A DNA stretch of 64,000 nt from Lepidodermella squamata (lineage: Eukaryota; Animalia; Gastrotricha). Each line of letters opens with the position of its first letter. Position 1 is the stretch's first letter. This document shows, one piece after another, positions 32,801 to 53,800 of the stretch. The stretch is from assembly GCA_047495785.1 (NCBI GenBank), contig JBLDXI010000003.1, forward strand, positions 806,001-870,000, read 5' to 3'. A program made the translations under genes and the position numbers. The notes beneath the pieces were generated by a model. That model was not told the origin of the DNA. It did not search any database and worked only from the letters and a program-made list of their open reading frames with translations.

Positions 32801-35800
32801 CCCGCAACAAGATCCCGTCGGGCCGCTGTCAGCCAACGAAATACCAGCCGGCAAAAACATTTTACTGCGCGCTTTGTTCTACCAACAGCAATCTCTCTTC
32901 GCCTCATCAGCCAATGAACGAGACCAGCTACTCGCCGAATCCCACCGATTGATCATGAAATACGAAAAGCACCAGCGTGATTTATACATCCTAATGACGA
33001 AACCAATGACAGTCGCCCACGGAAAGGTCCCGCCAGCGCCGATTTTAGTTCGGTTTAAAAACAACACCGCAATTTTGAAGGTCCCGGACTTTGAACCTTC
33101 GAATGGCGATAAAGTTTTTTGGTACGCAGTCCATGCCAGGGCTGTGACAGGGAAAGATCTGAAGGCTCGCTTAAACGACCGAAATCTAGTTGGAACCGGG
33201 GTTTTCATCCTAAACAGGCCTGAAATCGAGTTCAGTGTCGGTGGGTTACAGCCTTATCAGAACTACGTATTCGCCTTGGCTGCCTATACAGCTGAGGGAA
33301 AGCTGATTGGGGAATCTATCGGAGCTTCGACGCACCCAATACCTTTCACCCCGTCCTTCAGCGTGATGATAGCTAGGTTATTACTCGCACAGAAGGCGTT
33401 CCAAGCAGGATGTTACAACAGCTCTTACTGCAGCGGGGTAATAAACCTATTCTTAGCAGAACGGGATCAAAAGCTCGAAGATCGAGTCGTTGAAGATTGC
33501 AAAACAAAATCCTGCATTGAACACAAACAACTGAACGCCAGGCTACTGCGAGCTTCATCCCCAGTTGCGATTCGTTATTTAATGACCAGTTTGTTCATCG
33601 AGGTTTCGGAACAGGTTACGACCAATCGGTTGTTTTGCACGAGGTTATCGGACCCTGGTCGACAGGTTACGGTTCAAAGTGCTAGGATTCAGTTGTCAGC
33701 TTCGTTGCTGCTTCTAATCGACCTAGCTAGTTGGTGCAACGACCAGTCGTACATTTTGCAGGCAGTAACAGCGATCTACGGCCTGCTAGTGCCGATTTTA
33801 TTCCATAAATTGCAAACAACCGATATTTTGCTGCTACTCGAGCGATGTTTAGCGGCGTTACAGGAGGTTGAATCGGCGATTTTGAAGCAAAAACGCGCGT
33901 TGCCGTCAATTCAACACATGATTGCGGTGATCACGTTTCATACTGCAAAAATCCTAAGGCAACGGGGTGATCGGTCGTCGGCGAATCAGGCGTTAGAGGC
34001 TGGCCGCGCTTTGCTGAGGATTGATCGGATCAAGGGTAAGAACCAGGTTGCGTCGAACCCTAACCAGGATGCAGATGAGAATACTTGGTTACGCGAGGAC
34101 GCGTCCTCAGCTATGTCTATTGCTGATTTGAAGAAGAGGTATGCGGCAGAGGCGGATGCTACTGCGAATATGGGTTCGGGGGAGGATGGCGATTCGGGTG
34201 ATATGAGTGCGCGGCAAACGCAGGGCGACCAGAGTGAGGGTGACCAACAGCAGGCGGCCGGTCAAGCGAATCCGGCGCAGGTTCAACCGACGACTGGGTT
34301 CAATCCGAATCTGAGGGCTATTGAGACGCAGTTGGCAAAAAATGCTAGAAAAGTTACTGATCGGATGATGGAATTGACTGGCCATGAAGATCCCATGATA
34401 TTGGTAAGCTTTGTTAGATTCCTTGTTACTTATTGTATCGACATGTGGTCGTATCTTAGAATGCCTACATTGCTTACATGCCAGCGCGCCAGGCCTACAA
34501 AGAGGTCTACAAATTTCGACGCCGCCCAGCTTATTTCGAATACATTGTCCAAGTTATTGACAAAGCTCTCTCTGAGGACAATGCAGCGCTAGCTTTGGAA
34601 TGGAGCAACGAAGCTGAAGATTGGTTCGAAAAGTAAGAAAAATATTTCTTTATCCGAATGTGGTTATATAACTTGCATTGAATCTTTGACATCTGTGACA
34701 TTTTCCTCGTTATCCTACTAATTTTTTAATGCGTAAAAATTAGCGGCAGACAAACAGTTACAGGCCACCGCAGTGATCGAAGTTCCAGAATATCAAAGAA
34801 ATCTCTCACATCGTAAGAAATGATTTCAGTACATCTAGACTGTCCCTGTGTCCTCTACAATTGTTGCCGGCTAAACCTATGAATTACCTAGTAGATCCTC
34901 GCCGTAAAACTTATATTTTGAGTTCATTTTTCAATGCTCCTAAAATCGATTTCTAGAATCGATTTTGTCTGTTCTATGGCGTCTGGAAATTCATGGTTTT
35001 AATAAATTATTTTCATATTTTCCAGGCGAGATGACCAATTCAAAGTTGCTCAGGGTGGAAGGAAAACATTAGTCCTTCAGGTTGCAGCTGGCCGTTTACT
35101 GGACGCCCTTAGAATGAGCACCTCGGGAATAAGTCTTGTCGACGTTGTTTTCTTTCCAATACGTAAATTTCCATTTTTTGGAATATTTTCACATTTTACG
35201 ATTTTTCTCAATCTAGCTAATCCGTTGCCTGGGATGGATAAAAATCTGCAAAAAGTCAAGATCAAGTTGCGCAAGAAGCCGGTGTTTTTCAGCGATGAGG
35301 AACAGAATGCTTACGAGGATTTGAAGCGGAAAGTTGGTCGATATTTGGCACAGGCTATCGGCGAGAAGTTCCGACGAAAAACAAGGCTTGCAAAGTTGCG
35401 AAAAACCTGCCTCAACGAATTCCCCTTCCGAGTCCAGGTACCTTATTTTTCTCTAAAGATTGACGCTAAAATTTTTCAAGAAATATCTTGTGAAAAATTG
35501 GTGTAGAAAGGAGGACATTTATTTTTATTTTCATTCCCCCTTTTCAGGGGGTGAGCCGAATCCCGGAGGCACTGCAATACCGGGCCGACTCGTGGGCAGG
35601 GTCCAGCAAGCTGGCGTCACCTGCCCGGCTAGCCAAAAATCGGGCTAATATCGTAGGCCCCACATGGAGGCCGTTGTAGATATTAAACTACAAAGAACAG
35701 ATACTACACTTTGATCATAGCCAAAAAGGCCGAGAAGCGATAAAGAAGGGAAGGGCTAAAAATTAGCTGGAGGCATTCTAGGATAGGCTGATTTGCTAAC

Positions 35801-38800
35801 TGTTCGCTTCCTTACATATTAAGAACATATTTTATAAGAAAAACATAATTAATAATTATCAAGAAATAAAAATATAAGGTGGCTCCGACTTGAGTCGAAC
35901 TCGGGTCAAGAAAAAACTTGATCACAAGTGCGACCAAAAATCAATTCTTCATTCAATTTTTTTCATTTTGCTTTATAGTTGAACACCTTGGCTGCAACAG
36001 CGGCTACTCAAAACCTGGTCGACCGGCTCAGAATCGGCAGTTTGAGCTTCCGCCAAGCTTCAACTCAAATTCTAACCGATTGGACCGAGTTCGAAGTTAG
36101 CTGTTGCATGATCCTGAAACCAGCTGCATCCCGCAACGATTCAGCTGCTTCAAGTGAGAACAACCGTGACGACCGGCATCCTGGTCTCAAGCTGGCCGCT
36201 GAACTGCTGGCTAGCAACCCTTTCGCATCTCGAGAAGCTGCGCGGCGGCCTGTTTTCGGAGCTGGAAATACAACAGCGAGCAATCTACCAGCCCTGGGTG
36301 GTGGGAATGCGAATGCAACTGTTCCGGATTCGAGGGAGCAAATGCAGATTGTTGTCAAGATTTTGGACAACTACAAACGGGCGTGTGTTGTTGCGAGGAG
36401 AGGAAATCTGTGGACGCTACTGACCAATGTTGCTCAGCAGTTTTACGATACTGTTCACCTGTTGGGTAAGTATCTAAACAATTCTGGGATCAAAGGCGAT
36501 TGAAAATTTGACATACCTTTCGAATGCTCATAGCTACACAAAGTTAGTACCGCTAACTTTTAGCATAGTACCCTATTCCGGGAAAAGGAAAAATCTTTCG
36601 GCTTCCGAATGCCAATTTTGGAAAGTATTCCTAAATGTCCTTGAACGTACTTTATTTTGCATTTTTCATGTTTTAACCAAAATAATAATCTTCTAACTCA
36701 TGTTATCTTGAATCATTTTATTTTATGAAAAGCAAGCAATCGCAATTCGCAAAGATTTCAATCAATTTTTATATCATACGGTTATGGTAATCATCGTCCT
36801 CTATTTAGGAAAAATAAAGCTCTAGTTGATCGCGAGCTTCAGCACTATCAAAGCTGCTACATAGATGGCCTGAAGGTCGAATAAGTGAGCGAATCCTGTC
36901 GACCGGTTAGTTGTTGTTGGCATCAGGGTAGTAGTGGTCTTGGCAGCTTTTCTGGTTAACGCATAACAATGAACTTGTCCGTAAGGAGTAGCTGAGTAAA
37001 AGTAGCCATCATAGTATACCAGCTCGTTCGGTGTCCCCAGGTGGTCTGCTATGAACGTGCGTAATTTGCCTTTCCTATCGAACAGCTGCATTACGTTCTC
37101 CGTACGCAGCATGACCGCGTCATTGAAGATAATCGCAGTAGAAGTTGACGATGACCCATCTATGCGTAATGTATACCTAGTCAGCTTCAACCCAGATGCT
37201 AGTTCATATTCAGAGAACGCTGTCGTTCCGTTCCAGACTCTAAACGCTGACACGCCATCGGTAGCTGCAAAGTAAACAAGTGTGCCTAGGGTTGGATCGC
37301 GCGACCAGGTAGGTTGTTGTGTTGCCAAGTCCAAGGCAGTTAGTTCGTCGTTGACATTCAACAGAGCTGTGCCATTCGAAACTGCCGGGGCAGTGTAGAT
37401 TAGACTTGATCCTGGGAACGATTTCTGCCATAGAATCGCGCCCGTTACGGCATCGATGTTGTACACAGTGTCATCTCGACTGATGCCTACAATTTGCGTA
37501 TTATCATCGTACAGGGTCAAAAATGAGGGCGCATTATCGGCTTGCGAGAAAACGACGCCGGATCCGAAGTTGATATCGCGCGTGCCCCATCCCAAGTTGA
37601 AGGCATACAGTCCCCACGTGGATTCACCTGGTGCAATACATATAAAGGAGCAATTTAGCAGTGCTGTGTTATTGAAAATTGCAAAATTAGGTGGATATTT
37701 GTTGAACCTTATTACAGCTTTTAATATCTGAGCCCGTGCGCTACACGAGGGTTTCCATTAAAAATGCCTAATCTACGGATCCGTTATAACAGGCAAGATT
37801 ACCTTGGAGCTGGCCCGCTGTGATGACACGGCCTGTACGCTTATTTAGAACAGCTTGATCCGCCGTGATATTCACGGACCAAAAAATTTCAGGTGTACTG
37901 TCTTTGACGTATATTCCGTGCATAGTAGAACAGGACCGTGATAAGATGACCATAATGCCTGATCTCGGCTCAATCACCGGCGAATGCGGGATGCATTCTT
38001 CACTGCCGTACACCACACTAGCAAGTGGAGTTCCAGTTTTGGCGTCTAGGACATACAGCTTTTCGCCGCTTGCGTAGAAAATTTTGCCGGAATAAGCCAG
38101 CACCCGCTCTGTGTAGTGAATTGGAGGGTTGCTGTAGCCGAAGTTCCACTCCGCCATTATGCCGCTGACCGTTTCGATGTCAAGACTGGTGCCTGTGTAC
38201 CATGTATGGTTAAAATTACCGCCAGCGTCGATCCAGTTGCCTGCTGCTGCGGCGAAAGCAAGCGTTACTAAGAAGTATCGAAACATCTCGTTTTCTGTTC
38301 AAGGTTTTCTGTACAAAACTTGGTATTTCGGGCCCCTTTTGTACTCCTCCTTATCTTACCCAATATGCGATAAAGATGTATAAAACGGACCCTGAAAATC
38401 ACCGGATTAATCACAATGCTTTGCTATACATTGTCACCGGACTTGGTCCGGTGTGCGCTTATCAATAGATAAATAAACTGCTAAAGGACAGGGCTACGAA
38501 ACGCCTACCGTACGAAACCCCTTCTAGTCAAAGGCTTGAGGGAAATCAATGGCAGATCGATGGCGGAAAGATGAATTTTGACCTGATGCTTGAATTCATC
38601 CTATCCGTGGCCATGTGCTTGTTCTCATTCCATTTTCGAACTTCAACCAGTTGAAATACTTATCTCTATTACGCAGCAGCCAGGTATAGTAGCTCAAATT
38701 AGACGACATTTTTTTATTTGAGGTCCAAAAGAGTATCATGCATTGTCGGCATTGTGCAGGAGAGACTATGCACCTTACACTGGTTTTCAGCTGACCACTT

Positions 38801-41800
38801 GGAACACCTTCATTTGTCAGGGCGTGACCATTACCTAGTCAAGCTCAAAAAGATGATTAATCGCAGTCATGGACAAATCCTTATCACCGCTGGTAAAAAT
38901 AGCTGTACCTGACGAAATGATTTATCAAACTAGAGGGGCACTAACTGTAAACTGCGCGAAAAAAGTCGGGTACGCCCTTGGTCACTTTGCGCGGGAAATC
39001 TGTGGTGATTTTGGACCAATCAAGGTTTTTATTATTTTGTATACAAAATTATTATAAGGCAGACCCTGAATTGAGGGAGGGGTTAAAGGTCGTTTGAAAA
39101 ATAGAAGACAGTGCCTGATAATTCGGTATCTTCGGAATTTCGTATTTCATTTTTCTATGGCTCTATCATCTTGGGGTGTCAGATTATTCAATAGGTATTC
39201 CTTGTCAAAAAAAACCATTCGCTTATCAAAAAAAACCATACATTTGAATCATGTTTTATTTGATGAACGAATCAACCAAGAATCACGAACATTTGATACG
39301 CGAGATTTCGAGCATTTAATCAAATTGAATCATCTTTCTATTACATTTTTAATGGATGTGGCTATGTGAACACAGGAAAAGTGTATCGCCCAATGGCACA
39401 CATTGCGTGACACACAGCCAAAGTTAAGCGCGCACTGTGTTCAAGTAGCCAATCACGCACACACAATGTGTACGCATAGCCATTGGGCGATACCATAGAG
39501 ATCAGATTAATCAGGTTAATCTGATCTCTATGGGCGACACACAATCCTGTGTTCACATAGCCATGACCATTTTTAATTGATCCAGATCTTCAGCATGATT
39601 AAGGCTACTAAATAGATTAGCTGAAAGTCGAATAAGCGAGCGAATCCCGTCGTCAGGTTAGGAGGCTGAGCGGTCGTTGTCGGTGCGTCCTGTCTGATAA
39701 TTTTGTAGCACATGATTTTCCCAGAAGGTCCATGCGAGTAAAGGTAGCCTTCATAGTATGCTGACTCGTACCAGGTATCGAGCGTGTCTGTTACAGACGC
39801 GCGAGCTTTACCATTTCTATCGAATATTTGCATAGCGCTCTTTGTCCGCAGCACAACCGCATCGTCGAAGATGATCAAAGTCGAGGTTACATTTGGGTTA
39901 AAAAAGCTGGAAGCGTAATTATTTAGCTCCAATCCAGACCCAAATCTATATTCATAGAAAGTCTTCATTTCTTTCCCGATTCTAAACGCCGAAATGCCAT
40001 CTGTAGCTGCGAAGTAAACGCTGCTGTTGCCTTCGGTTTGATCTCGTGACCAAATAGAAATTTGTGTCGCTATATGCAGAGCGGTTAGTCTATCGTTAAT
40101 ATTCAACAGAGCGACGCCATTCTCAACAGCCGGTGGGGTGTAGATTTGGCTTGATCCAGGGTACGATCTGCGCCATAGAATTTCGCCGTTTATGGCGTCG
40201 ATGCTATACACAGTGTCAAGCCGGCTGATGCCCATCAATAGCGTGTCCTGGTAGAGGGTCAAAAACGAGGGTGTCTCATCAGCCTGTGCGAAGTCAACGC
40301 CGGGTCCGAAGTTAACAATGCGCTCGCCAGTTATCAAATTGAAGGCATGCATTCGCCACGAGGCTTCGCCTGTTGGAATAGACAATGTAAAGCATGCAAA
40401 TCATCAGCGATGGCTCTTTGCCATAATGGCACCTGAATTCCGATGATAAATTAGGAGGCCTGATCTGATGGTCTGAATAGCACAGTTCAAGAGCATTTCA
40501 AATGAAATCGATTTTCAAAGCTTCAATAGTCTGGCATAACGTGGTGGATTAGTACAAAAATACAGGAAATTTCTAGCGGAGAAACCAGAAACCAGTTTTC
40601 GAAGTAGGTTCCGAGCCTTAGGATCCTAGCTTTGGGTACTTGGGGTATTTTCGGTCCTGAAGGCCAAAGGTTCCCTCCCCCTTGGGTTTTTTCGGGTTTT
40701 CCTGCCTGTACCACTCAAGCGATGCAGGCAACCTCTGTACCCTCCTGAGGGGTTTTTTTTTATTCGCAACAGAAAATACAGCTACAGCTACAGTTTGTTG
40801 CATTCAAAAAGTCGCTACAGAAATTCTGTATTTCTCCTGTATTTTCTACGGATTCGAATAAAAAATACAGAAAATACAGCCCTATTTTTCATACAAAAAA
40901 TACAGCCAAAAAAAGTGTGCAAAGTGTAGAAATGGGGCTGCTTGTGCGCATAAAAAGTGCCGGGGCAAAAATAAGAAGAAAAAAATGGCTTGACCCCGCG
41001 AGGAGTCGAACCCTCCACATCGATTTCGCCTAATAAACAAAGTCACATTTGCGAATGGCGTATAATTTCTGCATTTTGCACAGATTCAAAAATCAAGTGC
41101 TGGAAAAATACACTTAATACTGTATAAAATATAGCGAATTTACGAACGCGTGGAAATTATTGCATTTTTTGCAGAAAGTGTCATTTTCGAACGACAATAC
41201 ACCAAATACAGTATATACTGTTCGAAGTGTTGCGAATAAAAAAAAAACCCTCAGGAGGGTACACTGTCAGAAACGTGCCCAGAAAGCAGATGTAAGAGAA
41301 AATCAACGGGGTAGAAAGAACTAGAAGAAATGTGCCAAAACCGCATGAAAACAGCGTTGTGCATAGGTTGTTCATATGTTCCCTGGAATTTCAACTTCAC
41401 CCATGGAATTTTTAATCAATTTCTCTCATAGGCAAGTAAAATAATAGAAAATATTCAAAAGAGTGCTGGGCGGAAGTGGGGTCTGTTTAGTAGTCTGCTT
41501 ACCTTGAAGCTGGCCTGCAGTTATGACATAGCGTGTTAAAGGATTTATAACAGCTTGATCCGCCGAGATCTTTACGGACCATAGAACGACGGGTGGATTA
41601 AGTGTCACGTTTATCGCATGCATTGTACCACATGACCTTGAAAGAATTATCAAAATGCCTGAATTCGGCTCGATCATAGGCGAATGTGGAGTGCATTCGA
41701 CGCTGTTATACACCACACTGCCGATTAGATTCCCAGATTTTGCGCCAAATGTATACAGCTTGTCGCCACTGACGAAGAAAAGCGTGTCGGAGTAAACTAG

Positions 41801-44800
41801 CACCCTCTCTGCGAACTTGTTGTTGGTGAAGATGTAATACTCCCACTGTCGTGCAATGCTGCCGACAGTTTCGATGCCAAGACTAACGCCTGTGTACCAC
41901 GTGTGGCCAGCATTTCCGCCAGCGTCGATCCAGTCGCCTGATGCCGTAGCGATAGCAAATGCTACTAAGAAGAATTGAAGCATCATGTCTTATTAGAGTG
42001 GTTCTGCAGAGCTAAATGTTATGCTCGTGGTTGAAATCTTCAGGATAAACCAATTTTTTGCTGTTCAAGTTTTGCTATCTTGTTTTGGTGCGCGATAAAA
42101 CGCAATCTTTCTAGGTTGCCGTTGTGATTTCCTTCGAGTTCGACAGGATAGTCGTGTGATTAGTCATAAGTTTAATCTGTAGCATAGTGGACGATTTTCT
42201 GGTTCAAACCGCCTGTATAGATACGGTTACTCCACGCAACATTTCATAAACCTTTTTATCTTCCGTATGCTTGTTATTTTATCAATCTGCATTGCCGTTC
42301 ACGGGGATGCTCATGCACAAGTTAAGCGAAATAGAAATTTTTATCCATCAAAGCGAGGTGGTTCTTTTGATTGCAAAACCTTTCGTTTCTTATAGAGGAC
42401 ATTTAGATTTGGATTATTCGGCTTGAATAAGCATTCCGTGAGGTATCGTGAAGAACCATGAAAGGGAGAATTAGTTTACATCACCAAAACGACCATTTAC
42501 CATTTAGACTAAGTTTATATCACTAGAAGTCATTTTGCAACACCAAGCAATTAAATTCTTCCCGCTCCCCTGTTGAATCTGTGGGGGATAGCGTGTACGA
42601 TCTATTTTACGATACTGCTTTGAAAATTATATGGTTGAAAAGGGCGTGAGCTACTGCCTTGTTTGACAACGGCACCACTATATGGTGAGGGTATGGTGAG
42701 GGCTAAAATTTATAAATTTCATTGAAATTATGCGTAAGGTGAACCTTTTAAATTGAAAATTCGAAGAATTTCGGCAGTATGGCAAGAGTGTTCATGTCTT
42801 TTAGATAACAATATCCATAGATATAATTCAGTAATATAGGTATAATTCAGTAATTATATCTATGACAATATCAGTTAACAAAATGATAGGACATCTGGAA
42901 TTGTTGGCAGGTACCCGTTGAGGTCGAAGTTCAAAGTCAGAGGACAATATTTTGAAACACTATCTTCTGGTATCCTTTGCTGCCTAATTTTTCGGACTTC
43001 TTAGAAGTGCTGAACGAGAAACTCTTGCTATTTTTGAAATAAATAAGAAAAACTGGAGGATTCATAAGGTGAATGTCCTTACAAGACATTTTTTTCATGT
43101 TTCAGTTCGTCAAATGTGGAATCATTTTATTTGAAATACAAGCAATCGCGAAAAGATAATGAGTGGGATTTCCAGCAATTTTATATCTTACAGTTATGAT
43201 AATCATTTTCCTTAATTGAGAGGAATCAAATTTCTAATTGATCGCGAGCTTCAGCATTAACAAAGCTGCGAAATAGATAGCCTGAAAGTCGAATAAGTGA
43301 GCGAACCCTGTCGACTGATTAGTCGTTGTCGGAATAAAGGCAGTAGTGGCTGGTTCAGCTGATCTAGTTAGCTTGTAACAATGAACTTGTCCGGAAGGAG
43401 TAGCTGAGTAGAAGTAGCCATCATAGTATGCCAGCTCGTTCGGGGTCCCAAGAGAGTCACCTATAAACGTGCGTAATTTGCCTGTCCTATCGAATATCTG
43501 TACTGCTTCCTCCGTCCGCAGCGCGACCGCGTCATTGAAGATGATCGCTGTTGAAGTTGATGCTGGCCCAATTACGCCAAATAAGTACGTCTTCTGGTTC
43601 GACCCAGACGCTAGTTCATATTCAGAGAACGCTTTTGTTCCGTTCCAGACTCTAAACGCCGACAAGCCATCTGTCGCTGCGAAGTAAAGGTTGTTACCTT
43701 CGACTTTATCTTGCCCCCAGATTGCTGTTTTTTGGTATACATCCAGGGCAGTTAGTCTACCTTCGAAATTAAATAGAGCGATGCCTTCATTAAACGGCGG
43801 TGGGGTGTAGATTTGGCTTGATCCCGTGTACAATCTCTGCCATCGAATTGAGCCATCTACGGCGTCGATGATGTACATTAGATCAAGTCGACTGATGCCT
43901 AACATTTGCTCGAAATCGACAATGGTTAAAAATGACGGTATGTCGTCGGCCTTCGTGAATTGTACTCCGGATCCGAAGTTAACATCGCGCTCGCCCGTTT
44001 CCAAATTGAAGGCATACAGCCCCCACGTGGATTCGCCTGGCGGTAAGAAAAAAAGGGAAAATTATTAGCGGCTCCCTATTTACACGGTTGCATTGGAAAA
44101 TGCTGTACTTATTTGTTGAACCTTATCATAGTAGCTCTTTTAACGCAGTGAATACTACTAGAAACGTGGCTAGCTTACCTTGGAGCTGGCCTGCCGTAGC
44201 GACACGGCGTTTGTAAGGAGTTATAACAGCTTGATCTGCCGTAATCTTCACGGACCAAAGAACGACGGGCGGATTAGCTGTGACGTTTATCGCGTGCATA
44301 GTAGAACAGGACCGTGAGAGGATGACCATAATGCCTGATCTCGGCTCAATCATCGGCGAGTGCGGGATGCATTCCTCGCTGTTGTACACTAAGCTAGCGA
44401 GTGGAGTTCCAGCTTTGGCGTCTAGGACATACAGCTTTTCGCCGCTTGCGTAGAAAATTTTGCCGGCATAACCCAGCACCCGCTCTGTGTAGTGAACTGG
44501 AGGGTTGCCGTAGCCGAAGTTCCACTCGGGCGCTATGCTGCTAACGGATTCGATGCCGAGACTGGTGCCTGTGTACCACGTATGGCCTTCATTACCGCCA
44601 GCGTCGATCCAGTCGCCTGATGCTGCGGCGATGAAAGCAAACGTTACTAAGAAGAATCGAAACATCGTTTTCTGTTCAAAACTTGGTATTTCTGTGCAAG
44701 GCTTTCTGTAAAAAACTCGGTATTTCGGGCCCCTTTTGTACTCCCCCTTATCTTAGCACATTATGCGATAAAACATACCCTGTAAGTCACTTGAGTGACT

Positions 44801-47800
44801 ACGGATTAATCACAGTCTGCGGCGTGTGGGTGTGGGTGTATCCGCATATGAATTGACTTTAACTCACTGTGTAACCATTATGGATTCCATGCCACTTGCG
44901 CAAGCTGATCGGCCAATCGATCGTTAGCACGGCCAATATCAATATGGGGCTATGAAACCTTTACTGTATTCCAGCTAACCGCTGGAAATACCTTTAATTT
45001 TGACGGAATGTTGACCATTAGTCATGCTCCAGAGGTGATTAAGCGCAGCCGCAGACATAACCTTATCTTCGCTGGCAAAAATAGCTACACTCGACGAAGT
45101 GTTTTATCACCACCTAGACAGAGCACTTGCTTATCACTCTGCGCTAATTCAAAAAAAAACACGCCCTATTACGTTCGTGGCGCGGAAGAACCAGCACTTA
45201 GGGCAAAAAAACTCGTGTACACAGGAGTAGTGTATTTTTACTTTGTACATTCGGGTACAGCTTTGCTGGCCGTAAAAATAAGTATGGCCCACTCGGCTGC
45301 AGAGCGAGTACAGGTGATCCGCCGACTGTATACTTATGAGATGTACAGTGTTCTCATACTGTAGCATTGGGTACAGCTCATTGAACTGTAGTCCAAGTAC
45401 AGTCGAATGCACCGTACTTGTTGAGTAAAGGAATGGCTGCCGTAATGACTGTGTACGGTTCGTCCAAACCATACACGAAAGTACAGCAATTCCCCATGTT
45501 TTATAACGTCGCACAGCGCACAGAGATTCTCGTACTGGAGGTCGCCGAGTCAGCCGCGGGTCATCTAATGATTTTATTGAAACTTCAAAATTGCGGAGAT
45601 ACGGTATATTTCTGGTCACCCATCTAGAAAAATATACAAAAATAGCGTTAGCTCAGAGAGCGAAGTGCCGCTAGGGATGGTAGGGATAATCCTGTCCAGT
45701 TTCATCACTCAGTCAAAAATCAAAGGGAGGCCCTTACTTCGATTTTCCTTATCCTTATACCAGTTCCGCTGAAACTTGTCGCTAATGACTGCGTTAAAGT
45801 TAAAGTTCTCGCTGAAAACAGACTAAAAATGCCCTCCAGAGCTCAACAGACTGGAAATTATAAGAAAAATATATTTTTTAGCTTGGACGCAGAATTTCGA
45901 AATTCTGAGCATCATTGCCACCCTGAAGAAAATTGAAAAACCGCAAGCTAGAAAGAATTTTGATTTTAGCTTCCCCACGCCCCACGGCGTATTAGGTCAG
46001 AGTTGTTCCACGCGTCTAAACATAAAGGCCCGCTCCGTCCTGTCGTTAAACATTTACAAATACGGATCGGCTCGGCCCAACCAAAATATCATCTCCTGTA
46101 CTTGAAGTACAGCATCTCTCCTGTACTGTAAGTACGGTAACATTGGGCCGTACGTATGTGTACAGCCCGATTTCTGACCGTACACAGCAGTACGGTCAGG
46201 CGTGCTGTACTGGGCTCTACAGCATTTTCCAGCTGTACAGCTAGTACAGGGCGTCGGCCGTACTTGATGTTACAGTCCGTTTGAACTGTACTGCTGTTTT
46301 ACAGAGCCATGGACTGTACCATTCAGTACTGCTGAAAAAATAGGCCTATTGCTCGACTTCTCATTTATTGATCTTGAACGCGGCATCAAAGCGTCATGAT
46401 ATCGAAAGTTTCGTCAAACCCCACTTTTTACATTAAAGCCTAATGGCAGCTATTTCGACCCTCCTTTATATGTAAAAAAAAATAATATGTATTAGGGTGA
46501 CTACCTACAACCTCAGGGTGTCTAAAAGGCATATTTCCGCGCTAGTAAATCGTTTGATTTCAGTGAAAACGGCTAAATGACCAGTGTCTTGTATGCTTGG
46601 TGATGAGCTAGGGCTAGTTTATTGGGACTGTCACCAAGCTGTCATCAAAATCGATTATGCGCGAAGTATCACCTGTGACCCAACGGAATGCATTTCTAGG
46701 TAGATCTCATCATGCTGATAAACTTTTTCTTTGAGAGCGGCTTCCTAGCTATCGCCATTCTCGAGATAACTGCCCAGGTGTGACACCAGGTAAGGTCACG
46801 TGACCAACTTGACACTGGTATTTCTCCGCGACCGTAAGTGATAAAAATATGGGGATTTCGAATTCTTTCTCCTCAATTGTTTCTCTATCGGAATAGCTCG
46901 GGTCAATAGGGAAAGAAAAATAAAATATTTCTTTCAAAAACATTTTGGGTTTTAATATAGGGTCAAATGGTCGAATGCCGAAATTTTAAAACAATCCTTA
47001 CTTCAGAACCATTTACTAACTCATTGTTTCAAAGAGGATTAGAGCTAAAATAGCACTGTAAATGTTCAAAAAGGCAGAGGAATTTTTTCTAGCTGTTTGT
47101 GAAAAATCGTTATCACTCTGCGATAGAGGGTCATTGTTTTTCACACTCATCTCTTCCATGATCAGCATCTCAGGCTCGTCGACGTGCAGCCGGTAGCAAA
47201 TCACCTGTTTTGCATTGCCAGCCGTGTAAAAATTGCCGTCGTAGAACGACAGCTGTTTCGCGTGGTGCAATTTATCGAAAATCGCCGCGAGTAACTTGCC
47301 GTTTTCTCTCGAAAAAATCTGAATGCCCGCTTTTGTTCGAACAGCAACAGCGTCGTTGAAAATCAGCGCACTGGTGACGGCGAAATCTTTAGCCTTTTCG
47401 AACCTGTAAATTCGCATGACGCTCCCTGTTGAAAAATCGAGTTCTGTCATAAAATCCGAGTCAGTGTACACGCGAAACACAGATTTGCCATCGGTTGAAT
47501 CGTAGTAATGAGCTGGATGGGCGTTTTCTCGATCGGCGTCTTCTGACCAAATTACAGAGTTTGAATTGATATCAAGTGCAGTTACCTGTAAATCCGTGAA
47601 AAACCGGAAGAATTAAAAAAAATCCGTTGATTACGGCCTAATTATAAAAATGGATAGAAATGCATTTAAAATGAAGGAAACATGGGAACTCAAAATTTCA
47701 ATTAAATTGAAAATTTATTTTAGATAATTTATTTTAAAATTGAAAAAATGTTAAATTAAAATTGTTAACTTTTTTATCATTAATTTTTTAATTGTTTAAA

Positions 47801-50800
47801 TTAAAAAAATTAAACCACCATTTCTTACCTTATTATTCGAATTCGTGATAAAGACACCTCCGAAAATTGGAGGGCCCTCCATAATGAAGCTGGATCCTGG
47901 TAGAGATTGGTTCCAGATTGGAACCCCGGTGCCAGCGTTGATACTGAAAACTGTATCGCTCAGGGTCACCCCAAGTAACCTCTTATCATCATATAGCGTG
48001 AAAAAATACGGAAAATCAATGTAGCCGGTTCCGTAATTTGGGATCCTGTGCCCATTTATCAAATCAAGTGCCACCAATTCTCGACTGGATTCAGGCGAGT
48101 AGGTACCAACTGTGATTACCAATTTAGAACTAGCGGCAAATTGCGGGTTTAAATCGTCGAAATACGCGCTCCATCGAAGTATTGGGGGGTTGGCTTCGAT
48201 GTTGATAGCCGTTAAAATGTTGCAATTGTTCGAAACCAGCAAAGTTTCAGATTTTGGCTCGATTAAAGCCGAGTATATAATGCAATCGTTTTCACGGCTG
48301 TAGACTAGACTAGACAGCAGTCGGCCCTTTTTCGGGTCGATTACGAATAATTTGCCATCGCCTGGGTAGAAAAGCTTGTCCTGGTAGATGAGAATTCGGT
48401 CGGAATAGCGAATATCAAAGTCCTTAGGCGTGAAGGTCCATTTTCGCTTGATTTTTGTGATTGGGCCAAGATTTTCGTCGACATAGCTTGTATGGGCGAA
48501 ATTCCCACCAAAGTCAAGCCATTCAGCTGAGATTAGATCAATAAATAGGCTTAGTATAAGAATTTTTGTTATTATTGGCCTCATTTTTAGCAAGAGGCAA
48601 TTGTGTGAACTCTCATGATGAAGTTCGGAAAAATCTCAATTTTCACAAAAATTTTATATGGAAATCTCGGCCGGGGACAAAAACATTGTTTGTTTGTTTA
48701 TTGCGCTGAGTAAATTATCATAATATAATCGATAATATGTCATGCGTATCTTCCCGGACCTACTATTTGCCTAATTTTGTGATCGCCAAACAATTAATTC
48801 GGATCGATAATGAAGAACACTCGGCATCATTGATTTTCAGCTTGAAAATTATGATTGTCCCACCAAAAAAATTGAACGCATGGATTTTGCGCTTGTTGGA
48901 CAAAAGAAAGTCAGCCGTGTTCATGCGTACGATAAGCTCGGTGGAGCTCCTTTTTTAATCGGAAAAATGAAACTAAAATGTTGCGAAAACTGCTAAAAAT
49001 ACCGGGTAAAATTTTAAAAATTCGCAATAAATTGAATGAAAATTCAAGCACTTATGTGGAAATTCTCATTTTTTCCCGTGAAAAATTAAAACAAATTGTG
49101 TTACTTTATATTGGATTTTAAAATTCCTGACCTCGAAATATTTTTTAAATTGCATTTAAAATGTCAAAAATGACTCGAAATTTTAACGGGTCCAAATTTT
49201 GTACGTTTAAAATTTTCCAATTTTTTACCATTTCGGCTTTTTCATTTATTTTATTGATATTATTGCAACCAATAACCGTTGGATTTTTCATATTTTAGAT
49301 ACCTGGTACCATCAAATAGGTAGAAAAACTGTTTTAATTTATCGGAAAAATCACTGATTTGTGAAATCGATAATTTGAATCGTTATCGGCCCTGCAGGCC
49401 AAACAAAAACCGTAAACTGAAAGTATTGAAACTCGAAAGCTATATTTTAGGGAAATCTTGTTTCTAGCTTGAAATTCTATGCTTGAAGTTCCCAAATTTG
49501 TGAAAAAATGTCATTATTTATGTTTTCAAGGTGCAATTGGCCAGCGGTATCCAGTAATTCAAGAGGCTCTAGCCCAACGCCTGCCGCTCACCGCCTACAT
49601 GGCAGCCGATTCCATGCTGGACATGATGCAGCAGTTCCGCGAATCTAACCAACTCGCCTTCCCCGAGGCGCTACCCGGCGGCCACGCGCTGACCTTCACG
49701 CCGGCGCTGGACGACGTCGCGGCCGTGAATCGCCCATTCGCCATTCGCCTGTCAATGTTCGCCATTTATTTGCTGTACAAAACGCAGAAATGGGAAAAGG
49801 CGATTGATTTAATGCTACGCTTGATTGCGTTGACCAACTACCAGTTGACGGATGTTATTGGGCCGATGTTGGTTGCGTGCCAGCGGAAACTGACCGAGCG
49901 AATTCGCACGGCGAATGGAACTATCCCGCAGGCCCATTTCGCCCAACTAGGATTCGTTTCGCCGGATGATTATTTGACCCTGCAAATTCGGTAAGAAAAT
50001 AAAATCGGATTTATTCATAATTTTATTGTAATTTTAAAAACCTCGGTCTTATTGAATTTTAATGCTATTTACTTACTCTCAATCTGTCAGCTATCCGACT
50101 CATAATGTCAAGAGAACTCGGTTAATTTATTTTTCAATTTTCAATTCTAATTTCAATTTGATTTTTAGCTGGAAGTGGATTGCGCTTTCGAGATTCTGTT
50201 CGATTTTTTTTACATTTGAATTTAGTAGACAATTCGTTTTAATTGAATCAAATGCGAGCTGCTGAGTAAAATCCTAAATTTGAGAAAAATTTCAAAATTT
50301 TGGAAAAGTGATCACTTGATTTTTGATTAGTTTCATTGATTTTACTTTATTTCAGGTCTTTGTAAAATTTGAATTTTTCACCTGGAATGACGTTATTTTA
50401 ATTATTAATTATTAATCATGTTTACACCAAAATGATGTGGCCATCGCGCAATATTTGAGAACATTTAAATAAAAAATGGCCTGATTTTCGTTGATTCCGC
50501 TTGGACGTCACGATTGCGAGTAATTCAACCATCGTAAAACCATATGAATGAGGTCGCATGGCGCATTTACTGAAGGTCTATGCGCATGAAGTCTATTAGC
50601 AATATACGTTACAGAATCAAGTAATAATACGACGAAGCATCGGTTTTTAGCTAGCTATCAACAACAGCCCTCTAATTGCCTTTTATCTGCATAAAAACTA
50701 GGATATTCGAGGCGAACTTATGTCATGTGCAGCAATTTGCAGAGAAAAGAGCCGGCCATAGAGAATCGAACGGGCTATCAGCGATTTAACCACATGAAGC

Positions 50801-53800
50801 CCGGCAAATGCGCAAAGTTTGCCAGAATATGCTATTCTGTTATGCGTAATTCTGGCTAGATTCGCGACCTCCGTCGAGCATAACATAGGACATGAAAAGG
50901 CTGTCAGTTATTGCGGTCTTTTTCGATTTTTATATTTCCCAACATGAAAGAAATACAATTTTTGAGTTTTTTGAGGAAAAATACCGAAAAAGTACCGCGG
51001 GAATCGGCATCAAAATTCATCCCTCTAGACTGTTCTAATATCGTGAAACCTGTCTAAAGCTCTGCTTTTAAATGCGATTTCGGCTCCGGCCTTGGGACCA
51101 GTTCCCAACCAAAAACTATCGCAGCAGTCTTTGAAAAAATCGGTTGATTGCCAACCGAAAAACAGGAAAAAACCTGAGTTCCAAGGTATTTTCATGAGGA
51201 ATCTTTAGGCCTCGTCGTTACGTTTGACTTATTAGAATTATTCTAAATGGCTCTTTTGAAATTTGCCAAGTCTTCAATTTCCATCCCTCAACTTTGGCAA
51301 ATATGATTCCCTTGAACGATATTCAGGAAAATTTGAGGTAAAAAATTACTAGGAAGATAATTAAAAATAGGGTCGCTTAACTTGTCCGTTCGAGAAACCC
51401 TAGCCAAACTCAATCGACTACTGTTTTTTGGTTTCGCCAAAAAAAATTCGCCAAAGATGACCCTCAAAATAATGAGCATAACAACTCGCAAATCCTATGG
51501 CGTAGTAATGTGTGGCGCAATAATTAGGCAAAATAAAAGCATTGTGTGCTACATCGTTCTTGCAAAAATTTTCATTACGCAGTTTGATCGCTTCGGAATC
51601 ATTTCGCATTTTCATATGTTTGACAATAGACGCAGCTTTTAAATGGTAATTTTTCAAACTTCAATATTTTGCTAATTTTTATTCAGCAGAAAAATTATTA
51701 GAATTAGCTTTTAAATTAATTCAATTTCCAATTTATTGCCTTTGTAAAAAATTGAATTTTTGCTATTTTTCCATCAGATTCAAGCCTACTTTGAAAAGCA
51801 ACCCAATCGACCCAACCAGCCGCCTGGATCCGGCCCTGGTGCGCCAGATGCTGAACGACGGCTCGTCGCTAATGGCGTCCAGCGTGCCGCACGACGCCGA
51901 AGCAACGGCCCAATTCCTGCGCAGCGTCCTGCCCCGAATGCGATACACCTCAATGGCGCTGCGGTACTCGCGCGGCCTATTCGCCCGACTCATCACGTCC
52001 AACAACGCCAACCCAATATCGAGTAAGGAGTCGAAAAATTCAGTCGAAAAATCAACCCCGGCCCGGGTTCAACCGCCGACGGCTAGCGTGATTTTCGACG
52101 AGAAGCTGAACCCGGTCGAGAGTGGCCCGATCCGGGACTGGCAAATCGTGGCTGAAAGTTATGAAAAAACTATTGAGCTACTAACCGGGGAGAACTCGAA
52201 TGACGTAGCCAGTCAAGCGTATCGCGAGCTAGGCTTCGTTTTCCTGATGTCCGGCAACAAAAAGGCTTGCCTCCACGCCTGGTCGCTCGCGTTCGATCTC
52301 ATTGTCCGGAATATGTTTGTCGATAAGGTGACTAATGCCCTGGATTTGCTGGATCAGTTGTTCGTGAGCCGAGGTGGGGGGTCGAATAATTATAAGCTGG
52401 AGCAGGATTTGTTGAATTCGCTCGGCGCGTGGGGCGTGGCCTATGCTGCGGTGTTGCTTGTTGATTGCTCGCAGTTGATGGTTGCGTTGGATTCGTCGGC
52501 GTCTGTTGAGGATAAACGGCGGCTGTGCCTTCACACGGCTGGACATATGCTGCGGGCGTTGCTTCGCGGGTCGATTGTCCACCCGAAGGAGGACAACGAG
52601 TATGCGAATTACGAGATTGGCAAGGCGGATTCTTTGGTCCTAATTCCAGGTAATCATTTTTTACACGTTTAGAATTATTCTCCAATTTTAAATTTTTAAA
52701 TTTGCCTTTAAATTATGTTCAAATTAATCTTTTAATGTTGAATTTCAACGATCGTAATTTTTATAATTTTAAATTTATTTTACGAAGTGTTCCTTCTCAA
52801 ATGTAAAATTTTTTATCCTTTCGACAATTCAACCTTCCATGTAGATTTATGTATAAATTTGTAACCTTTCACTCATATTTTCATAAATAAAAATGAATTA
52901 GCAAAACGATGATCAATGGTTAGGGCTGTGGGGTTAGGGTTATGGGATTAGGTTTGGGTTTAGGATGCGTTTCGGGTTTTGGCGAAGTTTGATTTTTTGC
53001 CTCTAGCAGTTCATCAAAAACAGTTTTCAAACCGAAAAAATATGGGTGTGCTAAGTACGCACCCTAAATTTAGGGTTCCGGCACCAAAATTCTCCAAACT
53101 TTGGACTCCAGCACTAGATTTCCCCTAAATATGTTTTTTTCGGATTTCTAGTCTTAACTAGAATCTCAAATTTTTTGTTATCATGCCTAACCAATAGAGC
53201 TTCATATTACGCGTATTTCGCGTTATGAGCGGTCAGTTTACGCATTATACTTCCTCCTATTGAGCCGATATCAATTCCAAGTATCGATTTCACAAATCAA
53301 AGATTTTGCCGATATCGGCCGTCTTGGAACCCAATATTGATATTTTTTCTACGTAGCCTAGGGCACCATGTAGCTAAAATAAAAAATCCCAGGACACACC
53401 GAAATCTCAAAGAATCTGTAAAATTTAGTGCTGGAACCTCATTTTCAGTGGTGGAAATATGTAGACCCAAAAAAATGAAGTTTCAAGGATCGTAGATAAT
53501 GAGCTCTAAACTGTATTTTATTTTATTTTAGTTCTAATTTTGTCTAAAAATGCTTTTTAAATATTTTCGGGAATTGTTAAATGAATTTTGAAAAAATTCA
53601 AATAAATCACCCTATTATCATAAAATTCAGGGTGATTTCAATAAAATTTGAGCACCACTTTGAGAACACGGCTTGATCTTAATCTATCGTAATTCATTGA
53701 AAAAAATGATCCTTGGTAATAATGTAGCCAGAATAACTTTGGCTTAGCTTTTCAACACCGAACAATAAAATCACAGGAATTTTATTATTGCGTAAATCCT

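Follow-up and report, generated by a model that had tools for sequence, protein, structure and literature searches.

The closest known counterparts of the four gastrotrich proteins considered here, P1 to P4, are the PQQ-binding-like propellers of prokaryotes (PF13360), which are single propellers of about 380-440 aa; P0139, P0002, P0075 (metagenomic) and the Fretibacterium MAG protein P0165 are examples. They are similar in length to P1-P4 and align with them collinearly, both groups have a W...(H/R)T motif immediately behind a leader, and the blade turn A-x-D-x-x-T-G-x-x-x-W is common to the two. Some of them, P0139 and P0002 for example, likewise have a linker and a C-terminal hydrophobic anchor. 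That said, P1-P4 have a degenerate motif in five of their eight blades, their genes carry spliceosomal introns, their tails lack basic cytosolic residues, and the motif form G-G-N-x-x-H-T-(W/S)-Y was found in no relative among the prokaryotic genomes and metagenomes scanned.

BamB (YfgL), a lipoprotein of the machine that assembles beta-barrels in the bacterial outer membrane, is an eight-bladed PQQ-like propeller similar in size to P1-P4. It is the best PDB family by sequence (E 2e-4) and ranks with the best by structure (Z 11.9). The likeness lies in fold and not in function. P1-P4 have no lipobox, an animal has neither an outer membrane nor a BamA partner, and identity with BamB was rejected at 24 bits against a cut-off of 285 for the TIGR03300 equivalog. 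YxaL of Bacillus velezensis (PDB 7eq5) is a secreted, non-enzymatic eight-bladed PQQ-like propeller, as is proposed for P1-P4, but this bacterial protein is soluble and lacks the stalk and anchor predicted for the latter. No other structural match is as close in sequence (18% identity, Z 11.1, over model residues 14-252), and this is too low for a shared ligand to be inferred.

Among animal proteins, the EMC1 N-terminal domain, FAM234A/B and ACSF4/AASDH (PF25293, PF23727 and PF13570) fall in the same Pfam beta-propeller superfamily as P1-P4, though these are large multi-domain or transmembrane proteins and do not combine signal peptide, propeller and GPI signal. Hedgehog-interacting protein (HHIP) and the propeller lectins of invertebrates, the tectonins and the tachylectins, are extracellular or membrane-tethered animal propellers that serve as binding modules, and the propeller of HHIP is similar to the PQQ-dependent sugar dehydrogenases of bacteria. 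HHIP is of the six-bladed GSDH type and the tectonins and tachylectins are of the five- or six-bladed tectonin type, families other than that of P1-P4, and none of the searches run found a sequence relationship between any of them and P1-P4.

The window analyzed here is a 64,000-nucleotide stretch of the Lepidodermella squamata genome (contig JBLDXI010000003.1). Between positions 36822 and 48584 its minus strand bears four paralogous genes, arranged head-to-tail and with two exons each (Table 1), an array that a sequence-only reading had delimited in the same way and with matching protein lengths of 426-441 aa (P1, 429; P2, 426; P3, 429; P4, 441). The paralogy is far past chance (tblastn E 1e-14 to 1e-113, identity 32-78%), and all of the reading frames are open, intact and collinear.

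Table 1. Features of the propeller array and its host gene, in window positions; a slash marks an exon-intron boundary.
Feature	Position	Strand	Size	Content or basis
CFAP54_N exons	24319-25919	+		same host gene
CFAP54 upstream flanking exon	32763-34589	+		phmmer vs PDB 9ijj_H residues 846-1241, E 1.6e-47
P1 exon 2	36822-37627	-		rest of blade 3 to blade 8, Thr-rich linker, GPI-like tail
P1 exon 2, in-frame reference	36825-37625	-	267 aa	
P1 intron	37628-37802	-	175 nt	GT...AG, phase 1, AAG/GTAA...CAG/G
P1 exon 1	37803-38286	-		signal peptide, motif, blades 1-2, first half of blade 3; ORF, alignment
P1 exon 1, in-frame reference	37804-38286	-	161 aa	
P1 5'-flank element	38292-38358	-	67 nt	conserved
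P2 exon 2	39573-40369	-	264 aa in frame	blades 3b-8, linker, tail
P2 intron	40370-41502	-	1133 nt	
P2 exon 1	41503-41986	-	161 aa in frame	ORF, alignment
P3 exon 2	43234-44036	-	266 aa in frame	ORF, alignment
P3 intron	44037-44178	-	142 nt	position and phase as in P1, P2
P3 exon 1	44179-44665	-	162 aa in frame	ORF, alignment
P4 exon 2	47016-47585	-	189 aa	blades 5-8, acidic/Ser-rich linker, hydrophobic tail
P4 intron	47586-47828	-	243 nt	AAG/GTAAGA...TTTACAG/G, phase 0
P4 exon 1	47829-48584	-	252 aa	signal peptide, N-terminal motif, blade 1 to part of blade 5
CFAP54 downstream flanking exon	49479-49991	+		phmmer vs 9ijj_H residues 1724-1808, E 9.1e-9

The intron position is common to P1, P2 and P3, the donor (CAAG/GTAA) and the acceptor are conserved among the three, and the P1 intron places an in-frame stop 11 codons past its donor. 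Exon 1 of P4 is uninterrupted where the other genes have their intron, whereas the P4 intron site is intronless in P1-P3, and the exon ends of P4 meet without gap or overlap in the paralogue alignment. The introns of P4 and of P1-P3 thus lie at differing sites, each gene without the intron of the other type, which is consistent with an intronless ancestor. Splicing and expression of the four genes are predicted from the conserved splice sites and frames.

The array lies antisense within the animal cilia gene CFAP54, between exons of that plus-strand gene on a single contig, which also bears Sec7-ARFGEF, DOCK and Cys-loop channel genes. Its GC content is host-like, and a GC3 of 0.52, compared with 0.54 in host genes, indicates that no foreign compositional signature is left. 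The dN/dS of P1-P4 is 0.40-0.55; the four genes are intact and selectively maintained, and the paralogues appear to diverge moderately fast.

Each protein begins with a hydrophobic leader, followed directly by the invariant motif W-x-D-x-G-G-N-x-x-H-T-x-Y (W-I-D-A-G-G-N-F-N-H-T-W-Y in P1), which is the predicted mature N-terminus. This motif, I-E-P-x-S and T-D-G-x-S are invariant in all four paralogues. The A/I-x-D-x-x-x-G-x-x-x-W turns are canonical in about three blades. Behind the propeller comes a linker, Thr/Pro-rich in P1-P3 and not in P4, where it is acidic and Ser-rich, and then a tail of 14-15 hydrophobic residues that runs to the very end, with zero cytosolic residues after it. The sequon beside the predicted omega site is conserved, and the P1-P3 tail is among the best-conserved segments (62% invariant positions), the P4 tail being weaker. 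Leader, motif, blade repeats, Thr-rich linker in P1-P3 and GPI-like hydrophobic tail had all been read from the DNA beforehand, and all are present as sequence features.

Assignment to the PQQ-binding-like family begins with Pfam PQQ_2 (PF13360), which matches P1 exon 2 at 36.5 bits against a cut-off of 27.6, as well as P2 exon 2 (30.6 bits) and P4 exon 1 (28.0 bits). P3 exon 2 falls below the cut-off at 14.6 bits, so the membership of P3 rests on its 66% identity to P1. In a PDB sequence search with P1 exon 2, BamB was the sole family matched, besides a chance-level hit to DBF4 (E 0.22), and the nearest ESM Atlas clusters were almost all PQQ_2, save one unnamed and one SMP-30/gluconolactonase-like. 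Profile comparison by hhalign with seven prokaryotic single propellers gave an alignment that is collinear from N- to C-terminus: the N-terminal half aligned starting at the W...HT motif (probability 98.4, E 8e-15), and the C-terminal half matched the final five blades, nearly to the C-terminus (probability 97.7, E 1.6e-12). AlphaFold2 models of single exons, of low confidence (pLDDT 62.7 for P4 exon 1 and 54.7 for P1 exon 2), are all-beta with four-strand units, and Foldseek and VIA-align matched these partial models to propellers only, BamB and YxaL among them. Together with a reading of the blade motifs, the partial models add up to a putative eight blades plus an N-terminal closing strand. 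The PQQ-binding-like or BamB-type propeller fold that had been proposed is thus upheld by profile and by partial structure, and on balance we consider it fairly likely that P1-P4 are a lineage-specific secretory-pathway family, each consisting of one eight-bladed PQQ-like (PQQ_2, BamB-type) propeller.

With the exons as separate queries, neither an exhaustive search of 1.84 billion representative proteins nor two word searches of a 5.8-billion-cluster index turned up a close relative, and DNA-pattern scans of 185,579 prokaryotic genomes and of JGI metagenome contigs yielded none either. The best single-propeller matches reach at most 59 bits in the word searches and up to about 79 bits in the exhaustive search, with 23-40% identity across 21-65% of the query. 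The top matches of the exhaustive search score high through many repeats. The likeness to prokaryotic proteins is of a generic family level; those weak matches that have a name or context are all prokaryotic. Annotated animal proteins were absent from every search run, in keeping with the earlier remark that no characterized animal family with such an architecture was recognized; the EMC1_N and FAM234 models gave no match, and ACSF4 gave 16.7 bits against a cut-off of 133. The family appears lineage-restricted, in that no close relative was found.

How these proteins might work can be sketched from sequence rules. Transcription of each gene would start at a promoter of its own and run antisense inside CFAP54, and one GT-AG intron would be removed. 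The leader would direct the product to the ER and be cleaved after A-x-G or A-x-A, and the new N-terminus would contribute the ring-closing strand alongside blade 8, a role suggested by the collinearity of the profile alignment to prokaryotic propellers and by strand counts in the partial models. The last 25 or so residues would then be exchanged for a GPI anchor, the predicted signal being a small omega residue within N-x-S/T-T-G-F-A that a short spacer separates from the hydrophobic run, a layout judged by eye. In P1-P3 a Thr/Pro stalk, probably O-glycosylated, would lift the propeller above the outer membrane leaflet, where it may bind a protein or glycan ligand without catalysis, for example a microbe, a food particle or a component of the cuticle or matrix.

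GPI anchoring is probable, since the tail has just 14-15 hydrophobic residues and no cytosolic extension, small residues (S, T, G, A) stand 6-8 positions upstream of it, and a flexible Thr/Pro linker ahead of these completes the classical layout of a GPI signal. The tail could instead hold the protein in the membrane as a genuine anchor or serve as a peptide for interaction or retention, or secretion could simply release the proteins into the cuticle or medium. We regard this as unlikely, though it would account for a P1-P3 tail more conserved than most blades, which a cleaved signal need not be; the hydrophobic run is also short and has a Lys, and P0139 and P0002 share the layout with a real C-terminal transmembrane anchor. 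A catalytic propeller, acting as an ectoenzyme in the manner of quinoprotein dehydrogenases or tetrathionate hydrolase, seems highly improbable. Foldseek matches do include tetrathionate hydrolase and the methylamine dehydrogenase heavy chain, and the three invariant motifs might be read as catalytic, but structural matches of this sort are common to propellers of every kind, and WD40 proteins rank just as high. Identity as a quinoprotein dehydrogenase was rejected, there being no match to PF01011 or any dehydrogenase model and a propeller of about 385 aa, smaller than the roughly 550-700 aa of PQQ dehydrogenases. A binding function for P1-P4 is inferred from sequence.

The sequence-only reading had held the genes to be host-integrated, with spliceosomal-type introns in an animal gene, and the CFAP54 exons on either side of the array agree. 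The contrary notion, that the four genes stem from bacterial contamination or misassembly or are dead pseudogenes, draws its sole support from the prokaryote-like family assignment, and exons of a single animal gene on both sides within the same contig, GT-AG introns with internal stops, four open frames with dN/dS below 1, and host-matched GC and GC3 make it exceedingly improbable. To go further and read the bacterial-type signature as horizontal acquisition is not supported as it stands, as the searches gave no close relative from any domain of life, composition is host-like, and eight-bladed propellers of the PQQ type reportedly occur widely among eukaryotes (bioRxiv 10.64898/2026.07.14.738520). 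That preprint lists 4,651 eukaryotic PQQ-8-beta hits, with a clade across plants, fungi and metazoans whose placement relative to bacteria is unresolved. On the alternative of a vertical origin, an old eukaryotic PQQ-like propeller gene would have diverged fast, through tandem expansion under relaxed constraint and with no transfer, until the generic blade motif was the only thing still recognizable. The eukaryotic clade, the lack of a donor-like close relative, the host-like composition, the introns and a dN/dS indicative of fast evolution all suit such a descent. It nonetheless seems somewhat doubtful: the animal PQQ-like propeller models (EMC1_N, FAM234, ACSF4) are all below threshold, no search returned an annotated animal protein, the named weak matches are prokaryotic, the N-terminal motif directly behind the leader aligns with the prokaryotic one, and unlike intron positions between paralogues are expected from an intronless start. 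The single most likely origin, held tentatively and at a little short of even chances, is an ancient transfer from a bacterium or archaeon. As no tree could be built, transfer from a prokaryote is plausible as a hypothesis and is not a finding. Were it true, intron gain, compositional adaptation and tandem expansion would have followed the transfer.

Some noncoding parts of the array are also alike. The P1 5'-flank element is 93% identical to a counterpart upstream of P3 (44689-44755), which exceeds the identity of the coding sequences, and may represent a promoter, a 5'UTR or an acceptor region. Part of the P3 intron is 78% identical to the P1 intron. The P2 intron, larger than those of P1 and P3, contains a pair of 36-nt inverted repeats (40736-40771 and 41228-41263).

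The propeller array consists of four genes (P1 to P4, numbered by their order in the window) arranged head-to-tail on the minus strand, and both its position and the sizes of the encoded proteins agree exactly with the sequence-only reading, whose observation as a whole is borne out here. The gene models are predictions that rest chiefly on the way in which, for each gene, alignment to the uninterrupted paralogue brings the exon ends together with neither gap nor overlap; the joined frames were examined for openness and codon counts only. P1, P2 and P3 share one intron site, at which a CAAG/GTAA donor and a CAG/G acceptor are kept at the same codon. P4 is uninterrupted at this site and carries its single intron about 90 codons downstream, where P1 to P3 are continuous. 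Identity between paralogous pieces ranges from 32 to 78% (tblastn E values of 1e-14 to 1e-113), with P3 exon 2 being 66% identical to P1, and tblastn found no fifth copy or fragment in the window.

Predicted exons of the propeller genes and recognised exons of the surrounding cilia gene CFAP54 (window positions)
Feature	Position	Strand	Intron	Product or match
P1	exon 1 38286-37803; exon 2 37627-36822	-	175 nt, phase 1	429 aa
P2	exon 1 41986-41503; exon 2 40369-39573	-	1133 nt, phase 1	426 aa
P3	exon 1 44665-44179; exon 2 44036-43234	-	142 nt, phase 1	429 aa
P4	exon 1 48584-47829; exon 2 47585-47016	-	243 nt, phase 0	441 aa
CFAP54_N exons	24319-25919	+		CFAP54_N match
CFAP54 exon	32763-34589	+		residues 846-1241 of solved mouse CFAP54 chain, E 1.6e-47
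CFAP54 exon	49479-49991	+		residues 1724-1808 of solved mouse CFAP54 chain, E 9e-9

All four genes lie antisense within CFAP54, whose recognised exons flank the stretch of about 13 kb that contains the array. In a PDB search, none of three plus-strand open reading frames (45008-45361, 35114-35503 and 35979-36500) matched CFAP54. The contig also carries a Sec7-type ARF-GEF, a DOCK protein and nested Cys-loop channel genes, and the propeller genes have a GC content of 0.47 and a GC3 of 0.52 against 0.48 and 0.54 in their neighbours, values that we take as equal. The nesting within CFAP54, the animal genes on the same contig and the matching GC and GC3 together exclude contamination. The window as a whole has a GC content of about 43%, the same as that of the published genome. 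With their GT-AG introns and their location between CFAP54 exons, the propeller genes are stably integrated in the host genome and have a host-type structure.

CFAP54 (plus strand, 24319-64000) is in fact host to two separate antisense tandem families, one being the propeller array (36822-48584) and the other a set of minus-strand Cys-loop channel genes at 26406-31049, recognised by matches to Neur_chan_LBD and Neur_chan_memb.

By HMM score, P1, P2 and P4 belong to the Pfam family PQQ_2 (PF13360; gathering threshold 27.6 bits), with P1 exon 2 scoring 36.5 bits, P2 exon 2 30.6 bits and P4 exon 1 28.0 bits; P3 exon 2, at 14.6 bits, falls under the threshold and is placed here by its identity to P1. 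The sole solved family matched by sequence was BamB, a bacterial propeller lipoprotein (E 2e-4), beside a chance-level DBF4 line (E 0.22). Neighbours in the ESM Atlas were nearly all PQQ_2 clusters, bacterial wherever the taxon is known. Seven prokaryotic single propellers were aligned for a profile comparison with the two halves of the protein. The N-terminal half, in an alignment bridged with short pieces, matches over a stretch that begins at W...HT and includes blade 2 (probability 98.4, E 8e-15), and the C-terminal half (probability 97.7, E 1.6e-12) matches over the last five blades, stopping just short of the C-terminus. The similarity is therefore full-length and collinear, taking in the N-terminal closing strand and going beyond a resemblance of blade to blade.

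Structure models were built for single exons, namely P4 exon 1 (pLDDT 62.7) and, from P1 exon 2, the part that encodes the propeller (pLDDT 54.7); both are all-beta and composed of four-strand units. When the models are mapped onto the alignment and combined with the blade motifs, the predicted count comes to eight blades and the additional N-terminal strand. In Foldseek and VIA-align comparisons these partial models matched propellers only, among them BamB (Z 11.9) and YxaL, a protein secreted by Bacillus (Z 11.1, 18% identity), with WD40 proteins ranking equally. The all-beta models and the propeller-only matches thus support the beta-propeller fold claimed in the sequence-only reading, at the level of modelling; the finer family assignment comes from sequence.

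The putative propeller is set within a recurrent architecture. Each of the four proteins opens with a hydrophobic leader, 16-20 residues long, in which small residues occupy -3 and -1, as judged by inspection; this predicts an ER signal peptide. Directly after the leader, all four paralogues carry the invariant motif W-x-D-x-G-G-N-x-x-H-T-x-Y. About three blades clearly show the PQQ-type turn in its canonical form, A/I-x-D-x-x-x-G-x-x-x-W, which is degenerate in the others, and conserved cysteines occur in blade 2 (two) and in the last blade (one). The linker that follows the propeller is Thr/Pro-rich in P1 to P3 and acidic/Ser-rich in P4. At the C-terminus, a conserved sequon, N-x-S/T-T-G-F-A, stands beside small residues and is followed by a short spacer and 14-15 hydrophobic residues that run to the end. 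This layout of S/T-G-F-A, spacer and hydrophobic tail recurs in all four genes, if more weakly in P4, and has the textbook form of a predicted GPI-attachment signal, for which we looked for small omega and omega+2 residues, a spacer of 5-10 residues, a terminal hydrophobic run and no cytosolic tail.

The best-conserved segments of P1 to P3 are the N-terminal motif (80% invariant) and the tail (62%), as compared with 41-64% for the blades. The tail, T-G-F-A-x-L-F-D-x-Q-x-I-Y-x-x-A-L-I-x-L-K-x-x-I-N (36825-36899, 39576-39650 and 43237-43311), is thus more conserved than most blades, a pattern seldom seen in a signal that should be cleaved off. It may stem from gene conversion or from a role that depends on the sequence itself.

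Several better-known identities were considered and rejected. Membership of the BamB equivalogs is excluded by best scores of 24.4 and 17.9 bits against cut-offs of 285 and 423 (TIGR03300 and NF008351, respectively), and BamB matches, far below threshold, were all that an NCBIfam search returned. Nor is there a BamB-like lipoprotein signal: the leaders close with A-A-G, A-S-G or I-S-A, next to which come N/D/E and then W, and they lack a lipobox Cys. In PQQ-dependent dehydrogenases the catalytic domain is about 550-700 aa long and has PF01011 repeats as well as PQQ and Ca/Ln ligands. The propeller of P1 to P4, at about 385 aa, is too small for such a quinoprotein, and no PF01011 match was found at E values up to 1. 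The animal PQQ-like propeller models EMC1_N, FAM234 and ACSF4 gave no significant match.

Database searches placed the family at a distance from everything in the collections covered. An exhaustive search of 1.84 billion representative proteins with an exon-2-level profile returned 7,581 matches, none of them close. The top matches are proteins of 900-4,300 aa in which 7-22 separate repeats each match, mostly on profile positions 48-110, and single propellers of about 400 aa score at most 79 bits. Word-index searches yielded 2 and 13 matches of at most 59 bits, all of the prokaryotic "PQQ-binding-like repeat protein" type, one of which is named and comes from a Fretibacterium MAG. Cluster members of the exhaustive-search matches are metagenomic entries only, and the two contigs with relatives that were inspected have prokaryote-type gene packing. 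Pattern searches for relatives bearing the N-terminal motif gave 62 matches in 185,579 prokaryotic species genomes and 332 in JGI metagenome contigs, none of which encodes a relative. All told, the similarity is of a generic kind, at the level of family and blade. Since no close relative appeared among the 1.84 billion representative proteins, the members of the family are, as far as sequence goes, true orphans; no description of the family was found in the literature searched, the Lepidodermella squamata genome paper included.

Recognisable relatives are all prokaryotic, the post-leader motif is common to them, and intron positions differ between the paralogues, all of which favours a prokaryotic origin by an old transfer. 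The same is true of the layout of leader, propeller, linker and hydrophobic tail, which recurs in some metagenomic prokaryotic single propellers (P0139 and P0002). P0139 parallels the animal proteins in layout, with a leader, the sequence W-W-P-M-F-H-H-D-P-K-H-T-S-Y, numerous N-x-T sequons and, at the C-terminus, a membrane anchor. Neither the word-index searches nor the best 150 of the 7,581 exhaustive matches, which are unlabelled, included an animal or other eukaryotic match, although these collections may lack genomes of close relatives such as other gastrotrichs; orthologues across Metazoa, which would speak against the sequence-only reading, were accordingly not found.

Despite this, the similarity to prokaryotic proteins is at the family level only and the composition is wholly host-like, both of which weaken the case for transfer. 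So does a 2026 preprint describing thousands of eukaryotic PQQ-type eight-bladed propellers, whose relation to bacteria is left unresolved there (bioRxiv 10.64898/2026.07.14.738520). Such propellers give a foothold to vertical descent with runaway divergence, which we hold to be possible but somewhat doubtful; the uniformly prokaryotic affinities of the recognisable relatives tell against it. Transfer from a prokaryote we would put at a little short of an even chance. The sequence-only proposal of a possibly horizontally acquired family therefore stands in part, for the propeller family and the motif shared with prokaryotes hold up, and the family-level similarity and host-like composition count against it. 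A fuller scenario is a speculative one and, taken as a whole, rather unlikely: an ancient bacterial or archaeal surface propeller gene, already equipped with a leader and a C-terminal anchor, would have entered an invertebrate (probably gastrotrich) ancestor, where the anchor came to serve as a GPI signal, different paralogues acquired introns separately, and a large animal-specific repertoire of GPI-anchored receptors arose. If true, this would represent a new kind of animal recognition-receptor family on a prokaryotic scaffold.

The contig that carries P0139 (prokaryotic, from a metagenome) has, at 347-2970, a pair of neighbouring PQQ_2 propeller genes (438 and 436 aa) that overlap at stop and start.

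Values of dN/dS among P1 to P3 are 0.40-0.55, and selection on these genes is therefore purifying but relaxed, as is common for surface families. As to function, in the most likely mechanism the protein would enter the ER, where its new N-terminus would close the propeller ring, and would then be held by a GPI anchor, with a glycosylated stalk carrying a propeller that presents a non-catalytic binding face. Obvious candidate roles are recognising microbes or food and assembling cuticle or matrix. What appears to be new is a PQQ_2 propeller in an animal architecture of signal peptide, propeller, stalk and predicted GPI anchor, tandemly expanded. Should this reading be right, a propeller type that is elsewhere almost confined to prokaryotic cell surfaces would serve a little-studied animal phylum as the scaffold of an expanded lipid-anchored surface family, adding a new family to the binding modules of the animal extracellular repertoire. 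It would also provide a defined case of a foreign or orphan gene gaining introns and signals for secretion and GPI attachment, followed by tandem expansion.

Noncoding sequence around the genes has features of its own. Just ahead of their start codons, P1 and P3 carry a 67-nt element (38292-38358 and 44689-44755) that is 93% identical between the two, above the roughly 80% DNA identity of their coding sequences, and that may act as a promoter or 5'UTR element common to both. The two genes are also alike in the 3'UTR (82%) and intron (78%), although P2 lies between them. P1, P2 and P3 each have an AG following a pyrimidine-rich run, at 8, 18 and 6 nt upstream of the ATG, respectively (38287-38300, 41987-42010 and 44666-44680), a pattern that would fit spliced-leader acceptor sites; P4 has no obvious counterpart. 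The P2 intron, enlarged to 1133 nt as against 142-175 nt in P1 and P3, contains a pair of 36-nt inverted repeats (40736-40771 and 41228-41263), 97% complementary and about 490 nt apart, which may mark a small foldback or MITE-like insertion. Finally, a short dispersed repeat of 30-51 nt (49340-49390, 53264-53314 and 6840-6869; 86-93% identity) occurs in both orientations, near exons of CFAP54 and the ARF-GEF.
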